From Octopus bimaculoides (taxonomy: Eukaryota), in the NCBI RefSeq assembly GCF_001194135.2, contig NC_068981.1:94421343-94485342 (forward strand): DNA of 64,000 nucleotides. Reading direction: 5' to 3'. Of the stretch, positions 60,501-63,127 are shown one piece after another (within the stretch, counting starts at the first letter, position 1; the number at the start of each line of letters is the position of its first letter). The notes under the pieces were generated by a model, which made no database searches, was not told where the DNA came from, and worked only from the letters and a program-made list of their open reading frames with translations. The translations under genes were made by a program, and so were the position numbers.

Positions 60501-63127
60501 GAGTAAGACAATCACTACAGGTAGAGGTCAGCTTGACAGAATAAACTGTTCTACATCCTATTCATTACGTCCATTCCAGATGAGAACCATTGCTTAGATC
60601 CACTGTCAAAGGCTGTCTTAGAAGTCTGGTCACTCTGGTCTGAGAGTGAGTATCAGAGAATTATTTACTATTTCAACTAACTTTTTACAGAACACCTAAA
60701 GAGGATTGCTAATGCTAGCAATGAACATTAGAGCTGTTAAATAAAGAACAGACTGGTGTAGATGATAAATAGTGGTATTAAAAAAATGAGAACACGAGCT
60801 GAAAATATGACAGATACTTGAAACTTGCTAGAGTTAAAGGCATTGTTAGTGAATGAGAGATAAAATTCCTTTTGATGTCAGTCCATTCAAGATGGTCCCT
60901 GGTTCTATAATACAAATTTCCTGATTTAAAATGATCTCTAAATTAAAACATTCTATCAAAATTTTATGTTAAATTATGATCTGAACATAGCTTAATAATG
61001 ATTGCTATGTTACTAAACAGTTCATTATTTTAAAAATTAACTGAGAAAAGAAAGTGAATTTTAGTAGAAATATCATAACAAAAGGGTTAAAATAGACATT
61101 GGCTTACGTTTCTGCTTGATGGTTTCCACCATTTAATTTATCCATTTCCTCATACAACATAGTCATTAACTTCTTTACATAAAAATGAGGACCTGACTTC
61201 ATCATGTTTTTACTTGCTTCCATGAAATCTGATGCAGATTTTAAAAATTCTTTCAAATCTGAACCAAAATCATTCCAATCCAATGAAACTGGTGTACTTG
61301 ATTGCATAATATTGTCAAACTGTAAAATATAAGCATTAAATCCTGTTTGAATAAATTTCTATGGGCAATTATTTTGCTAATGATGCTAATCTGGAGTTTA
61401 ATGTTAGCGAATTATCAATATTAATAATCGATTAATTTGCAACTAATAAAAAATAGCTATGCTAAGTGTGTATGCTTATTTCTAAAAAATGAAAGAAAGG
61501 TGCGTTGTTGGAATTTGGATAACAAAAATGGTATTTCTGTTGAACTTTAGAATATGTATGTATGTATGTATGTATGTATGTATGTATGTGTGTATGTATG
61601 TATGTATGTTTGTATGTATGCATACATGCATATATATATGTATGTGTATATATATATATATATATATATATATATATATATATATATATATATATATATA
61701 TATCATGCACATATAATATATGTATATATATACATATATATGGTAATTGAAAGGTGGAAGATAGAATATATGAGAATTTATTGTTAATCACGACAATTGT
61801 TCCGATACAAATGTTTCTGCCTGCTCACTACCCTGATTACCCTGATGTCAAATTTTAGTTATTATATATATACCATATTTCCTAACTTCACTCATGGTGG
61901 TAAAAGTATTCTTTCAAAGTTACTTGTCACATAATGTTTAGCACTCTAGTAACAACATAACAGTTGATAATGATTATTGATTTTGTTGTCAGTCTGACTA
62001 AGCAGACCAGTGTAAAAAGGCATTCTAACCATGGACATCAAGTCTTTTATTCAAACATAATACATATAGGCCACACCCACGTAACGTAATTTTTTTTTAC
62101 ACAAAGGGTAATGATATGAGGAAGATTTGGCTGTTATTTCTATCTGGTCAAGCAATCAACTACAGGCTCCCTTTTAATGTATGTGGATAGAAATGACTGT
62201 TAAGGGTGAACATCATTAACATTGAGAATGAATATATATTTAGGAAGGATATACTTAAGCACCATAGCACTGCAAATTAACCAAATGCTTGTTAGTTAAT
62301 AGTATGTAGCACTAATTTTTCCATCTCAAATCACATCTATTTGTAGCATGTTTGCCACTCAAGAATCTCTGCACAGTTCTAAGGATAAGATCTGGATGGC
62401 ATCTGGACTACAATCCTTTGACAGTAGGTGTGTCATCTGTCAGTTAAATGTTTCAATTTCAAAATTATGAGAGAAAACTTACTACTATATCAACATTTTT
62501 TGTGTTGTAAAAGACAATTAACTGGTTTAGTTCACATATTGCAGGTTGAACAAGATTTCACTGAGGTCATGTCTATTTTAATACATGATTATAAGAGGTT
62601 TCTTGCAAAAGGGACATTTTAATCATCAGGATATTGTTAAAACTGGAAGAATTAACCCAAACTATAACAAGTAATGCAATGATTGGCTTCACTGTAGCTT
62701 GTGATAGGGTAACTATAGTCACAGAGATTTGGAACACCAGTAGTCATGAAGTTCCAGGACAGTTGCTCACAGAATTTTGAGTGAATAATATCGATGATGA
62801 GAATGTCAAACACATTGGCATTAAAGCATAAGAAGTATATACGATCAGTTTACATACTTCATAATGAACCATGTTATTGGGCAGTAGGAACTCATCTGTA
62901 TATTTCATATATAATTCGTAAATATAAAGACTGAAGAAAATTACCATCATATAGACTTCTGTAACAGAAGACAATTTCAAAACCAGACGTGTTAAGTTTG
63001 ATTTACAAAAAATAGCCTCCAGACTTTCAACTGGTATATCAGGAGACATGGTCCATGACTTTAATAATCCATTTTCTGAACACACCACTTCTTCAGGGTT
63101 AGATGCATTTTGGAGTAAAAAGTTAAC
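316..63127 (-). CDS. Multi-exon gene (33 exons traced, both ends outside window) encoding a giant tandem-repeat extracellular region; probable ABCA-family lipid transporter with expanded ECD1
   Basis: 33 minus-strand exons with AG/GT boundaries join phase-to-phase into a stop-free 5,795-nt frame. Exons recur as a 4-exon unit; Cys pairs and about 30 N-x-S/T sequons. The gene model is well supported; the ABCA identity rests only on remembered similarity of the Cys exon to ABCA ECD1 (identity confidence about 0.55). Confidence 0.9.
951..1165 (+). mobile_element. SINE with Deu/Nin-like core (aactttgcctttcatccttt...gataaaataagtaccag)
   Basis: Same core recurs near 40, 8320, 9690, 10600, 35470, 45600, 45800, 57230; core assignment from memory of Deu/Nin SINE consensus. 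Confidence 0.7.
2351..2448. repeat. (AG)n microsatellite
   Basis: Direct reading; a similar tract lies at 43861-43935. Confidence 0.97.
3334..3543 (-). CDS. Exon A9 (Cys exon, phase 0-0, 210 nt)
   Basis: ctttcactttctttcaaag|GTA...AAC|gtaagt; [18 protein letters not shown]...[17 protein letters not shown]...STYIYN; C-x26-C. Confidence 0.9.
3808..4201 (-). mobile_element. Full-length SINE, same family as 52429-52805
   Basis: Reverse-complement match along the full length; candidate TSD ctaggaat at 3800-07 and 4202-09. Confidence 0.88.
4326..4462 (-). CDS. Exon D8 (phase 1-0, 137 nt)
   Basis: ttgtatttacag|GA ACA...GAA|gtaagt; [45 protein letters not shown]. Confidence 0.9.
4841..5748 (+). mobile_element. 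Internally deleted mariner (Tc1/mariner) transposon with ~200-bp inverted ends
   Basis: TA at both ends (4839-40, 5749-50); terminal IR caaggtacattcagaaagtatctgattttat / ataaagtcaaatactttttgaacacacctcg. Decayed transposase: [12 protein letters not shown]...EWYNCFKHG...SGRP and [15 protein letters not shown] (first catalytic D motif). Confidence 0.9.
6847..7034. repeat. Compound (GAT/GAC/AAT)n trinucleotide repeat
   Basis: Direct reading; begins at the end of an RTE-tail repeat. Confidence 0.95.
7424..7840 (-). mobile_element. tRNA-derived SINE (ggctgtgtggtaag head, internal microsatellite, tgactgaaacaagtaaaaga tail)
   Basis: Reverse-complement match to 58871-59293; partial copies near 6410, 11920, 14330, 15280, 17995, 30990, 31335, 48190, 48670, 50470. 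Confidence 0.85.
7956..8113 (-). CDS. Exon C8 (phase 2-1, 158 nt)
   Basis: tcttttacag|T ATT...AAA G|gttagt; [19 protein letters not shown]...[13 protein letters not shown]. Confidence 0.88.
9216..9448 (-). CDS. Exon B8 (phase 0-2, 233 nt)
   Basis: ctattttctcag|TTT...GAA AG|gtaatt; [17 protein letters not shown]...[11 protein letters not shown]. Confidence 0.88.
9686..9900 (-). mobile_element. SINE, same family as 951-1165
   Basis: Reverse-complement similarity across head, core and tail. Confidence 0.75.
11030..11242 (-). CDS. Exon A8 (Cys exon, phase 0-0, 213 nt)
   Basis: aattttcccag|CTT...CAG|gtaatt; [18 protein letters not shown]...[18 protein letters not shown]...QLIKQ; C-x28-C. Confidence 0.9.
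12129..12262 (-). CDS. Exon D7 (phase 1-0, 134 nt)
   Basis: atatattgtag|AC GTT...AAG|gtaaaa; [44 protein letters not shown] (not in ORF track). Confidence 0.88.
13516..13673 (-). CDS. Exon C7 (phase 2-1, 158 nt)
   Basis: ctctctcatttttcag|A CCT...GAT G|gtaagt; [20 protein letters not shown]...[13 protein letters not shown]. Confidence 0.88.
14085..14312 (+). repeat. Interspersed repeat corresponding to the RTE-associated 3-prime tail
   Basis: ggcattaggaagggcatccagctgtagaaactctgccaaatcagattggagcc...gcatggaaagcagacgttaaacaatgatgat; copies near 6770, 13240, 30133, 37370, 41000, 48400, 49330. Confidence 0.8.
14957..15177 (-). CDS. Exon B7 (phase 0-2, 221 nt)
   Basis: ttccttacag|TTT...AAT GG|gtaagg; [20 protein letters not shown]...[10 protein letters not shown]. 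Confidence 0.9.
16730..17924. repeat. Compound trinucleotide repeat (CAC/TAC/CGT), 864-N gap (16988-17851), then (TATG)n
   Basis: Direct reading. Confidence 0.95.
18777..18910 (-). CDS. Exon D6 (phase 1-0, 134 nt)
   Basis: gttgtatag|AA AAT...GAG|gtaact; [44 protein letters not shown]. Confidence 0.9.
19782..19921 (-). CDS. Exon C6 (phase 2-1, 140 nt)
   Basis: poly(t)cag|A TCT...ACA A|gtaaga; [20 protein letters not shown]...[13 protein letters not shown] (not in ORF track). Confidence 0.88.
20456..20682 (-). CDS. Exon B6 (phase 0-2, 227 nt)
   Basis: ttaattccag|ATT...GCT AG|gtaata; [29 protein letters not shown]...FADTNILKA. Confidence 0.9.
21110..21530 (-). mobile_element. Non-LTR retrotransposon 3-prime fragment with restriction-like endonuclease domain (CRE-like), frameshifted
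   Basis: [10 protein letters not shown]...[13 protein letters not shown]...[10 protein letters not shown] followed, after frameshifts, by LGQRL...[20 protein letters not shown]. Confidence 0.7.
22777..22989 (-). CDS. Exon A6 (Cys exon, phase 0-0, 213 nt)
   Basis: tttattttag|ATT...ACA|gtaaga; [17 protein letters not shown]...VRKAVCDTL...GLKELIDT; C-x27-C. Confidence 0.9.
24191..24400. mobile_element. Second copy of the ~210-bp mariner MITE (opposite orientation)
   Basis: Reverse-complement similarity to 51995-52202; left TIR aagggagtgctgaaaagttcctggcttt, right TIR partly decayed. Confidence 0.75.
24475..24611 (-). CDS. Exon D5 (phase 1-0, 137 nt)
   Basis: tttccaattttcag|CT TCT...AAT|gtgagt; [45 protein letters not shown] (not in ORF track). 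Confidence 0.9.
26048..26190 (-). CDS. Exon C5 (phase 2-1, 143 nt)
   Basis: tatatttcag|C TCC...GAT G|gtaagt; [20 protein letters not shown]...[12 protein letters not shown] (not in ORF track). Confidence 0.88.
27034..27251 (-). CDS. Exon B5 (phase 0-2, 218 nt)
   Basis: catccttttcattctag|CTC...GTA AG|gtaagc; [21 protein letters not shown]...[13 protein letters not shown] (not in ORF track). Confidence 0.85.
28954..29151 (-). CDS. Exon A5 (Cys exon, phase 0-0, 198 nt)
   Basis: tttttatcag|CTG...TTC|gtaagt; [17 protein letters not shown]...[17 protein letters not shown]...DFLTF; C-x22-C. Confidence 0.9.
31912..32045 (-). CDS. Exon D4 (phase 1-0, 134 nt)
   Basis: tattacag|GT GAC...AGA|gtgagt; [44 protein letters not shown] (not in ORF track). 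Confidence 0.88.
32263..32396 (-). CDS. Exon C4 (phase 2-1, 134 nt)
   Basis: tctttttctctatttcttttctag|T TTT...ACC G|gtaagg; [44 protein letters not shown] (not in ORF track). Confidence 0.88.
35056..35252 (-). CDS. Exon B4 (phase 0-2, 197 nt)
   Basis: ttttatttctaag|TCT...GAA AG|gtataa; [20 protein letters not shown]...[12 protein letters not shown]. Confidence 0.85.
35470..35685 (-). mobile_element. SINE, same family as 951-1165
   Basis: Reverse-complement similarity across head, core and tail. Confidence 0.75.
35805..36010. repeat. Interspersed repeat, two copies (also 34225-34390)
   Basis: aaatattctgctca(g/a)tatca...accagttgagcatgtccctt...gttgagagggattcttt in both. Confidence 0.75.
36962..37189 (-). 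CDS. Exon A4 (Cys exon, phase 0-0, 228 nt; three Cys)
   Basis: tttacctgcag|AAA...ATT|gtaagt; KPIMEVL...[40 protein letters not shown]...QPLSI; C-x25-C plus an internal Cys. Confidence 0.9.
39748..39878 (-). CDS. Exon D3 (phase 1-0, 131 nt)
   Basis: tttttag|GA GAA...AGT|gtaagt; [43 protein letters not shown]. Confidence 0.9.
40750..41110 (+). mobile_element. RTE-clade LINE reverse-transcriptase C-terminal fragment with 3-prime tail ending in (GAT)n
   Basis: [11 protein letters not shown]...[48 protein letters not shown] is the post-RT motif typical of RTE LINEs. Confidence 0.8.
42650..42801 (-). CDS. Exon C3 (phase 2-1, 152 nt)
   Basis: tacttgcag|C ATG...GAG G|gtaagt; [19 protein letters not shown]...[10 protein letters not shown]. 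Confidence 0.9.
43639..43835 (-). CDS. Exon B3 (phase 0-2, 197 nt)
   Basis: ttttttag|CTT...ATT GC|gtgagt; [19 protein letters not shown]...[15 protein letters not shown] (not in ORF track). Confidence 0.88.
44229..44411 (-). CDS. Exon A3 (Cys exon, phase 0-0, 183 nt)
   Basis: tttttatag|GTG...ACA|gtaagg; [15 protein letters not shown]...[17 protein letters not shown]...TLIYT; C-x19-C. Confidence 0.9.
46140..46279 (-). CDS. Exon D2 (phase 1-0, 140 nt)
   Basis: ttacattttag|GG AAA...ATG|gtaaat; [46 protein letters not shown]. Confidence 0.9.
47360..47600 (-). mobile_element. Mariner transposase 5-prime fragment (HTH region, SETMAR/Hsmar1-like)
   Basis: [20 protein letters not shown]...[35 protein letters not shown] matches the mariner N-terminal DNA-binding motif; boundaries approximate. 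Confidence 0.8.
47820..47956 (-). CDS. Exon C2 (phase 2-1, 137 nt)
   Basis: ttttcacag|T GTT...CAA G|gtaatc; [21 protein letters not shown]...[10 protein letters not shown]. Confidence 0.9.
48527..48655. repeat. (CA)n microsatellite
   Basis: Direct reading. Many further (AT)n, (CA)n, (TATG)n tracts near 6320, 9107, 11820, 14600, 38340, 41110, 43230, 50610, 58370, 61555. Confidence 0.97.
49603..49811 (-). CDS. Exon B2 (phase 0-2, 209 nt)
   Basis: caattccag|ATA...AAC AG|gtaaac; [19 protein letters not shown]...[11 protein letters not shown]. Confidence 0.85.
49937..50311. repeat. 21-bp minisatellite, about 18 units
   Basis: Unit gttagcaatgtgggattcaca; first three units perfect, later units increasingly diverged. 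Confidence 0.92.
50728..51632 (-). mobile_element. Internally deleted mariner, copy 1 of a second family, ~230-bp inverted ends
   Basis: TA flanks; termini cgtagtccgatcaataagtatccggactg and its near reverse complement. Minus strand encodes decayed HTH (IKFYQKL...[12 protein letters not shown]) and an AKFVPKLLS motif. Confidence 0.88.
51650..51930 (+). mobile_element. tRNA-derived SINE (related copies at 40080-40420, 12950-13195, 41950-42065, 46940-47260)
   Basis: tRNA-like head tggcttaatggttagag...gagttcaatttc; shared ttgagcaagacactttattt core. Confidence 0.7.
51995..52202. mobile_element. Mariner-derived MITE (~210 bp)
   Basis: TIR tgagggggtgctga(g/a)aagttc(t/c)tggcttt at both ends, TA flanks; interior retains transposase C-terminus [16 protein letters not shown]. 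Confidence 0.85.
52429..52805 (+). mobile_element. Full-length tRNA-derived SINE with 14-bp TSD
   Basis: tRNA-like head with A/B boxes (tggcccagtggttagg ... gtttcgattccc), (CAA)n tail, TSD acaactgttagagt at 52415-28 and 52806-19. Confidence 0.88.
53366..53689. repeat. Near-perfect 92-bp inverted repeat with 140-bp spacer (foldback/MITE-like)
   Basis: 53366-53457 is the reverse complement of 53598-53689 with one mismatch. Confidence 0.92.
55057..55251 (-). CDS. Exon A2 (Cys exon, phase 0-0, 195 nt)
   Basis: ttccacag|GTT...GCT|gtatgt; [18 protein letters not shown]...[12 protein letters not shown]...KLSIA; C-x27-C. Confidence 0.9.
55947..56823 (-). mobile_element. Internally deleted mariner, copy 2 of the same family as 50728-51632
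   Basis: Same termini (cgtagtctgatcaataagtatcaggactg), TA flanks, colinear similarity to copy 1 (ORFs 50798 and 56017 are paralogous). Confidence 0.88.
57409..57521 (-). CDS. Exon D1 (phase 1-0, 113 nt)
   Basis: ttttgatttcag|GA GAC...AAG|gtaagt; [37 protein letters not shown] (not in ORF track). Confidence 0.85.
58871..59293 (+). mobile_element. tRNA-derived SINE, full-length copy of the 7424-7840 family
   Basis: A box ggctgtgtggtaag, B box gggttcagtccc, internal (AT)n/(GT)n, same tail. Confidence 0.85.
59531..59673 (-). CDS. Exon C1 (phase 2-1, 143 nt)
   Basis: ttcctag|G ATT...AAA G|gtatta; [18 protein letters not shown]...[12 protein letters not shown]. Confidence 0.85.
59792..60142. mobile_element. 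hAT (Charlie-like) non-autonomous element, 351 bp
   Basis: TIR cagtggttctcaa / ttgagaacctctg; 8-bp TSD tcttagac (59784-91) / gcttagac (60143-50). Confidence 0.85.
61108..61319 (-). CDS. Exon B1 (phase 0-2, 212 nt)
   Basis: ttttacag|TTT...GAAAC|gtaagc; [28 protein letters not shown]...[17 protein letters not shown]. Confidence 0.9.
62945..63127 (-). CDS. Exon A1 (Cys exon, phase 0-0, 183 nt)
   Basis: ctttatttttcag|GTT...ATG|gtaatt; [61 protein letters not shown]; C-x24-C. Confidence 0.9.

Follow-up and report, generated by a model that had tools for sequence, protein, structure and literature searches.

A 64,000-nucleotide stretch of the Octopus bimaculoides genome (contig NC_068981.1, positions 94,421,343 to 94,485,342, hereafter the window, with coordinates counted from its first letter) contains nine head-to-tail copies (U1-U9) of a four-exon cassette on its minus strand. 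The gene that carries them is quite likely a single ABCA full transporter of about 7,000 codons, which is split into two models in the current annotation, and its transmembrane domain (TMD) and nucleotide-binding domain (NBD) part is identified by annotated domains. The module encoded by each cassette is predicted, with a probability of roughly 75-80%, to be derived from the lid of the first extracytoplasmic domain (ECD1) of ABCA transporters, based on sequence evidence that is partly transitive and partly targeted. A first-pass annotation, made from the letters of the DNA, had described an exon at 62945-63127 as part of a multiplied ABCA ectodomain segment. The relationship to ECD1 is retained here in transitive form, with the lid as the source, and the hydrophobic tunnel itself is not the part that was multiplied.

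The window DNA is AT-rich (~32% GC), with N gaps, microsatellites and transposon debris. Exons were located by phase-aware dynamic programming with codon log-odds from 22 hand-picked open segments and generic splice matrices, and the model was refined by phase-constrained local searches. The resulting gene model has 33 minus-strand exons, all with AG/GT borders, 1931 codons and zero stops. Four exon classes were recognized, namely A (183-228 nt, phase 0-0), B (197-233 nt, phase 0-2), C (134-158 nt, phase 2-1) and D (113-140 nt, phase 1-0), which together encode a module of ~230 aa and recur at 6-11 kb spacing. Eight A exons are visible, the ninth (U7) being expected in the N run at 16988-17851, and dropping U7-A leaves the reading frame intact. 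Phase symmetry holds for the complete cassette and also for exon A by itself, so gain, loss or skipping of a unit keeps the frame, which provides a simple route for array growth.

Pairwise identity between the window units was 15-21%. With the flagged exon as query, no significant copy was found in the window by tblastn or phmmer because the repeat is too diverged, and an all-vs-all BLAST of the six-frame open reading frames (ORFs) of the window was swamped by transposons and microsatellite translations. In leave-one-out tests with hidden Markov models (HMMs), U5-U9 matched the other units at E-values of 1e-11 to 1e-21; the repeat status of U1-U4 is carried by the cassette structure and cross-species orthology. 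Among the 1931 window residues 17 Cys were counted, two for each visible A exon plus one extra in U4, and N-x-S/T sequons numbered 33, compared with 20.4 +/- 4.3 in shuffles. The proposal of at least nine multiplied units was borne out by the nine phase-conserved cassettes, the leave-one-out HMMs and the invariant Cys pair. No Pfam family (2025 copy) matched any unit or models the module, and no transmembrane-like stretch was observed in the window model (maximum Kyte-Doolittle 19-residue average 1.34). In agreement with the first-pass annotation, the window contains only ectodomain cassettes, with no TMD or NBD sequence.

The flagged exon is exon A of U1. On the minus strand its frame 1 gives 61 stop-free codons, with a translation that opens VNFLLQ and later reads AIFCKSNLT, and the other two frames of the reverse complement are full of stops. 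It is bordered by a ttttcag/GTT acceptor, with a polypyrimidine tract and cag, and by an ATG/gtaatt donor (phase 0-0). Exactly 24 residues lie between its two Cys (C-x24-C), followed by an NLT sequon, and the translation is identical to residues 752-812 of the RefSeq model P0001 (LOC106873158, Octopus bimaculoides). Translation, splice sites and RefSeq identity thus confirmed the C-x24-C exon to the base. A chance ORF or a transposon-derived exon was ruled out by the canonical splice sites, the exact RefSeq match and an orthologue in Argonauta. Searched alone, the exon had no match in Pfam or in the protein database, and the sole match among PDB sequences was NUP43 (E 0.06), taken as chance, with no ABCA at E ≤ 10.

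The full window model retrieved P0001, 'uncharacterized protein LOC106873158 [Octopus bimaculoides]', which has 2129 aa and no Pfam domain. U1-U6 are exact substrings of this protein (residues 752-2117), so 24 exons of the window model are independently validated. At its C-terminus, NPLE is followed by 12 codons of intron read-through past the donor of U6-D to a TAA. An 864-N gap follows closely on this stop and probably caused the annotation to split. In the chromosome record (GCA_001194135.2, 199.9 Mb) the next called gene lies 3573 nt after the end of the P0001 gene. Its start corresponds to window position 15165, an internal ATG of exon U7-B (FNKT/MVVKD), an exon that continues the cassette in frame. 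For its product of 5025 aa, PF12698 (ABC2_membrane_3) and PF00005 (ABC_tran) are each listed twice, together with PF23321 (R1_ABCA1), so the TMD and NBD domains that the first-pass annotation proposed to look for downstream are listed for the next model.

Upstream of the window, P0001 residues 74-104 (YPTRAMPSAG...CNLNNQC) align to ABCA4 53-83, and in whole-sequence comparisons with ABCAs the P0001 N-terminus matched ABCA4 (E 7.9e-8), ABCA1 (3.3e-5) and ABCA7 (7e-3). The ectodomain start of the giant ABCA gene that had been proposed is found in P0001. Of the upstream features that were expected, the start of ECD1 is present, but the first transmembrane segment (TM1) is missing from the octopus model, with no TM1-like segment in residues 1-70; the Argonauta protein P0009 opens with a canonical ABCA TM1 (LLRRRQPSLLLLEILWPILVFAIVAVI). 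The first exon of P0001 is probably wrong.

The Argonauta hians protein P0002 represents U4-U9 in a single ORF across the octopus break, and Argonauta's own break lies between U3 and U4. At the U7-A position the orthologue has a short A segment (C-x8-C), and U8 and U9 are 47% and 48% identical to P0002 916-1151 and 1152-1297, respectively. Because P0001 reads through, the next model starts inside U7-B and P0002 bridges the break, the two octopus models are assigned to one gene. The complete protein would be about 7,000 residues long and carry some 20-25 modules.

With a profile of the nine units as query, 1.84 billion representative proteins yielded 17 matches (E ≤ 1e-3). Units were found in Argonauta hians (P0002, 4510 aa, partial, 21 tandem units) and in the product of a neighbouring gene of this species (P0009, 1115 aa, with an ABCA N-terminus including TM1), in the cuttlefish Acanthosepion pharaonis (P0003/P0019, 1170/1587 aa), the scallop Argopecten irradians (P0011, 2878 aa), the annelid Owenia fusiformis (P0004, 3359 aa) and the sea cucumber Apostichopus japonicus (P0021, 5326 aa, units at 1262-3451 plus an ABCA core), and in a 20.5-kb assembled transcript (P0010, 6516 aa, ~18-20 units plus an ABCA core). 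Counting units in other molluscs, as the first-pass annotation had suggested, thus gave arrays in Argonauta, cuttlefish and scallop. P0021 and P0010 hold array and ABCA core in single proteins and are complete or near-complete ABCAs; the Pfam domains of P0021 are ABC_tran (two), ABC2_membrane_3 (two) and R1_ABCA1.

Octopus and Argonauta units are colinear and correspond one to one at 31-49% identity, compared with ~20% between paralogous units, which points to an old array whose units keep their order and evolve fast. Its most likely origin is an ancient tandem duplication of an ancestral lid module as a phase-symmetric exon cassette. In an alignment of 45 units from eight source proteins and at least five species, the two Cys were the only invariant columns, and the majority consensus after the second Cys was C-x-x-N-x-T-x-L.

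Two further observations were made in these proteins. In the damselfly Ischnura elegans (P0012/P0026, LOC124169130), 7-8 near-identical 196-aa repeats match the module only at ~80-223, which is the B-C-D part without the Cys exon, and no ABC motifs were present in the model. In addition, a polybasic KKRRRRQ was seen at ~3480-3490 of P0021, and in P0021 only, between the last repeat and canonical ECD1. Judged from this motif, it could be a furin-type cleavage site releasing the array from the transporter core.

The position of the array relative to ECD1 is clearest in P0021. Its first copy begins at residue 197 (about the equivalent of ABCA4 198), its last copy extends to ~3451, and the equivalent of ABCA4 356-432 onward follows. 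The post-array part aligns to ABCA4 369-1161 at E 5e-197, and P0021 scores about equally against the ABCAs in the PDB (ABCA1, 3, 4 and 7). Nothing but array lies between the equivalents of ABCA4 153 and 356, indicating that the lid was replaced, not added to. In the orthologues the array therefore appears to occupy the position of the distal lid of ECD1, from the equivalent of ABCA4 153-198 to that of 356. The corresponding region of ABCA4 has been described as a flexible, hollow lid (residues 138-271) that was not modelled in cryo-EM (PMC7932691), and the distal extracytoplasmic domain (ECD) of ABCA4 has been placed at residues 101-300 (PMC8501128). In ABCA2 the distal globular domain was likewise unresolved (bioRxiv 10.64898/2026.08.25.746927).

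An HMM of the repeats, built from 80 segments of which none is N-terminal, recovered the canonically placed copy from each of the four proteins possessing one, with the Cys in register (E 6.7e-9 in P0009, 2.6e-6 in P0021, 2.7e-5 in P0010 and 5.2e-5 in P0001). When the four first copies were compared with the repeat alignment by hhalign, a probability of 95.4% was obtained (E 1.7e-8, 191 columns). The first octopus copy aligns to ABCA4 198-261, KEIACNATLLNSYIIFPQ versus KDIACSEALLERFIIFSQ, with both Cys in register, and the alignment of the last sea cucumber repeat to ABCA4 153-236 takes in helices like those of exon D as well as the Cys pair. In these alignments ABCA4 C205 and C230 pair with the two module Cys. 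The ABCA4 motif KDIACSEALL...YALCSL, which the first-pass annotation had cited, is thus real and aligns with the first copy of octopus and the last copy of sea cucumber. Furthermore, ABCA4 153-261 scored 8.1 bits in register against an HMM of the D-A junction built from repeats only, a score reached by 0 of 2000 shuffles; in another targeted shuffle test the real score was reached by 4 of 1000.

To describe the structure of the module, two AlphaFold models were built. One A-to-D unit, modelled from nine paralogous rows, was all-helical and unreliable, with a predicted local distance difference test (pLDDT) score of 53 and a predicted template modelling score (pTM) of 0.25, and Foldseek returned only APLP1 E2 and similar helical noise for it. 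A 116-residue segment consisting of exon D of U5 and exon A of U6, modelled from seven rows, reached pLDDT 78.5 and pTM 0.66 with nine short helices. Judging from this model, the folding unit may extend across the boundary between cassettes, combining exon D of one with exon A of the next. A separate observation concerns exon D, whose consensus (sPelrkll.l.e.sPdvvevlletil..dP; for example 4326-4462, 12129-12262 and 24475-24611) matched PDB entry 8g8i, C3HR3, at E 6e-11. The resemblance of exon D to designed helical repeats is most likely due to chance or to convergence on an idealised helix-loop-helix.

Several results weigh against a single ABCA gene with a lid-derived array. U1-U4 reached just 5-13 bits (z ~2.5-6) in the leave-one-out tests, which is weak similarity. 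The phmmer alignments to the ABCA4 lid are weak alone (independent domain E 0.097 and 1.2), hhalign of the lone ABCA4 fragment gave a probability of 8.9%, and the region used in the targeted shuffle tests was picked after the phmmer alignments had been seen. PDB-wide searches with the 9-unit, 45-unit and 38-sequence D-A junction profiles returned no ABCA at E ≤ 10. The top PDB matches of the deep unit and D-A junction profiles were de novo designed helical proteins, so part of the profile signal may be generic helical composition. Neither model found an ABCA when compared with the PDB by Foldseek (best E 0.87 for the A-to-D unit and 1.4 for D+A), and D+A had no detectable structural match there at all. 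The AlphaFold alignments had just 7-9 paralogous rows. The comparison of one unit with solved ABCA structures that the first-pass annotation had recommended thus gave no match with any profile or model. No vertebrate protein, including ABCA13, was among the named matches of the module profile in the 1.84 billion representatives. For the downstream gene, the domains of the 5025-aa product were taken from a precomputed list and coordinate arithmetic, and a protein-database search with U7-U9 (15177..316, minus strand) gave no match despite this product being on record.

One alternative explanation is that the gene encodes a giant ABCA in which an unrelated helical repeat was inserted into ECD1 and expanded, with the likeness to the C-x24-C segment of ABCA4 being convergent. 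Three profiles and two structure models found no ABCA in the PDB, with designed helical repeats picked up by the profiles instead, and this, together with the weak ABCA4 alignments, would fit such an insertion. However, over 191 columns the repeats are homologous to the canonically placed copy (HMM E-values down to 7e-9), which also aligns to ABCA4 198-261, a last repeat from a different phylum aligns to ABCA4 153-236 through both its exon-D-like part and its Cys pair, and no shuffle among 2000 reached the score of the real ABCA4 fragment. In P0021 the array stands in place of the lid between the positions equivalent to ABCA4 153 and 356, and the negative Foldseek result carries little weight, since the lid of ABCA4 is unmodelled (PMC7932691). 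An unrelated insertion is accordingly considered unlikely, and derivation of the module from the ECD1 lid is preferred.

Whether all nine units enter the mature protein is a separate matter. The 0-0 phase shared by exon A and the complete cassette, the frame kept on loss of U7-A and the poor coding score of exon U2-B would be consistent with largely alternative cassettes, the skipping of which leaves mature proteins with far fewer than nine units. The RefSeq model nevertheless retains all 24 exons of U1-U6, the units correspond one to one with those of Argonauta, and the 20.5-kb transcript of another species (P0010) encodes 6516 aa with ~18-20 units, which makes extensive skipping less probable still. 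The first-pass annotation had also considered a secreted lipid-binding protein. That the gene encodes a separate soluble or secreted protein of helical repeats, which might bind lipid and merely adjoins an ABCA gene, is very improbable: P0001 does lack Pfam domains, TMD and NBD and ends with a stop codon, the window has no transmembrane-like segment and the downstream product is known from its domain list, but the stop is reached only through 12 intron codons past a good donor before the 864-N gap, the following gene model begins at a Met inside U7-B, an exon that carries the same cassette on in frame, P0002 bridges the break in one ORF, P0001 opens with an ABCA ectodomain start whose Argonauta counterpart has an ABCA TM1, and P0021 and P0010 join array and ABCA core in one polypeptide. 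The secreted protein is thus an artefact that arises because the gene model breaks off at the assembly gap.

In a giant ABCA with a lid-derived array, each module would probably be a disulfide-stapled, N-glycosylated helical bundle. The chain of modules would then form a long glycosylated helical scaffold, luminal or extracellular, at the place where ABCAs release lipid from the ECD tunnel, and this scaffold could retain lipid or pass it on, serve as a tether or spacer, or route the transporter to a compartment. In ABCA2, lipid has been proposed to climb the hydrophobic tunnel of ECD1 and to exit through the lid (bioRxiv 10.64898/2026.08.25.746927), and an array of 20 or more lid-type modules would be placed right at that exit. 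A role of the array as a lipid holder or hand-over scaffold is plausible, and the lipid conduit or store suggested in the first-pass annotation is a hypothetical function. Mouse ABCA13 depends on its long N-terminal region to reach vesicles, and without it is mislocalised and no longer drives cholesterol internalisation (PMC7948424); with this region as a parallel, a function of the array as a sorting determinant may likewise be plausible.

The coordinates of the exons and of the dispersed elements in the window are listed in the table below. Exons of U1-U6 were assigned from the exon model and the exact match to P0001, and those of U7-U9 from the exon model and orthology to Argonauta P0002.

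Table. Exons of the nine cassettes, assembly gap and SINE-like copies in the window
Feature	Position	Strand	Description
U1 exon A (flagged)	62945..63127	-	61 codons, C-x24-C; P0001 752-812
U1 exon B	61108..61319	-	212 nt, phase 0-2
U1 exon C	59531..59673	-	143 nt, phase 2-1
U1 exon D	57409..57521	-	113 nt, phase 1-0
U2 exon A	55057..55251	-	195 nt, C-x27-C
U2 exon B	49603..49811	-	209 nt; weak coding score, yet in RefSeq model
U2 exon C	47820..47956	-	137 nt
U2 exon D	46140..46279	-	140 nt
U3 exon A	44229..44411	-	183 nt, C-x19-C
U3 exon B	43639..43835	-	197 nt
U3 exon C	42650..42801	-	152 nt
U3 exon D	39748..39878	-	131 nt
U4 exon A	36962..37189	-	228 nt, three Cys
U4 exon B	35056..35252	-	197 nt
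U4 exon C	32263..32396	-	134 nt
U4 exon D	31912..32045	-	134 nt
U5 exon A	28954..29151	-	198 nt
U5 exon B	27034..27251	-	218 nt
U5 exon C	26048..26190	-	143 nt
U5 exon D	24475..24611	-	137 nt
U6 exon A	22777..22989	-	213 nt, C-x27-C
U6 exon B	20456..20682	-	227 nt
U6 exon C	19782..19921	-	140 nt
U6 exon D	18777..18910	-	134 nt; P0001 reads through donor to TAA 18738-18740
Assembly gap	16988..17851		864 N; expected site of U7 exon A
U7 exon B	14957..15177	-	221 nt; ATG 15165-15163; orthologous to Argonauta P0002 743-914
U7 exon C	13516..13673	-	158 nt
U7 exon D	12129..12262	-	134 nt
U8 exon A	11030..11242	-	213 nt, C-x28-C
U8 exon B	9216..9448	-	233 nt
U8 exon C	7956..8113	-	158 nt
U8 exon D	4326..4462	-	137 nt
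U9 exon A	3334..3543	-	210 nt, C-x26-C
U9 exon B	316..548	-	233 nt; gene runs past low window end
SINE-like copy	7456-7960	+	
SINE-like copy	58719-59262	-	
SINE-like copy	30996-31260	-	
SINE-like copy	31397-31760	+	
SINE-like copy	15235-15561	+	
SINE-like copy	6403-6605	+	

The cassette introns carry debris of mariner and SINE-like (short interspersed nuclear element) type. Remnants of mariner/Mos1-type elements were found at 4926-5240 (plus strand) and 56505-56660 (minus strand), whose ORFs both match Pfam HTH_48, at E 1e-8 and 9e-9. A frameshifted relative of the 56-kb element lies at ~51 kb (50500-51420, minus strand), and the two share the unusually long A-B intron of U2. The SINE-like element carries microsatellite tails and occurs in introns at least six times, on both strands. 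A second dispersed repeat family was observed at 3783-4250 versus 52358-52890, and also at 47088-47231, with inverted copies 88-92% identical when translated.

ABCA13-type transporters are the largest ABC proteins and are linked to psychiatric disease. The canonical ECD1 lid (ABCA4 ~138-300; also ABCA1, ABCA7 and ABCA2) and the octopus module share the same place, after TM1 and the MPSAG...C-N-x-N-N-x-C motif and before 'GKILYTPDTP'. Both have a Cys...Cys segment and a helical, glycosylated, extracytoplasmic character, which for the octopus module is predicted from sequence and models. They differ in number, since canonical ABCAs have one copy of ~130-200 aa, whereas the octopus-type array has ~20 or more diverged copies, each on a four-exon cassette. 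Vertebrate ABCA13 (human, 5058 aa) and ABCA12 are likewise full ABCAs with a region of several thousand residues between TM1 and the rest of ECD1. Human ABCA13 is comparable in size to the sea cucumber protein P0021, and the octopus protein would be ~40% longer.

The ECDs of ABCA2, ABCA12 and ABCA13 have been called 'abnormally large', and the structure and mechanism of ABCA13 were described as largely unexplored in a 2026 review (PMC13161189). For its N-terminal region, Nakato et al. reported neither well-conserved domains nor homology to known human proteins (PMC7948424), and a lack of known domains was also reported in PMC13161189. According to Prades 2002, as cited in PMC7948424, much of this human region is encoded by two giant exons, in contrast to the four-exon cassettes of octopus. 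In invertebrates, NBD-based surveys have placed large 'ABCA13-like' ABCAs near ABCA12/13, including Tigriopus japonicus ABCA13 (3124 aa), with Drosophila CG34120 and Tetranychus tetur27g01890 as sisters to ABCA12/13, and no repeated ectodomain module was described in these surveys (PMC4247197, PMC3724490). In Pfam and in the literature on ABCA13 and invertebrate ABCAs, no repeated lid-derived module or exon cassette was found to be described.

For giant ECD1 regions of this kind a building block can now be named, a ~230-aa module encoded by a four-exon cassette and marked by two invariant Cys and a conserved sequon. It occurs in molluscs, an annelid and echinoderms and has its probable origin in the ECD1 lid. 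The annotation is also corrected, as two octopus 'genes', one of them labelled uncharacterized, are here read as one transporter of ~7,000 residues. The module alignments (A2 and A3) serve as profiles that could be tried on vertebrate ABCA12/13, and the 116-residue D+A construct, with fair AlphaFold confidence, is singled out as a candidate for expression in structural and lipid-binding work. A wider and tentative idea, with the odds somewhat against it, is that throughout the ABCA12/13-type clade, human ABCA13 included, the 'featureless' region is a diverged array of the same lid-derived module. If this were true, the array would have general use as a helical filament or hollow chain, glycosylated and tens of nanometres in length, at the lipid exit of the ECD tunnel. 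It would keep lipid or pass it on, or send the pump to particular vesicles, and its length could be tuned as phase-symmetric cassettes were gained or lost.

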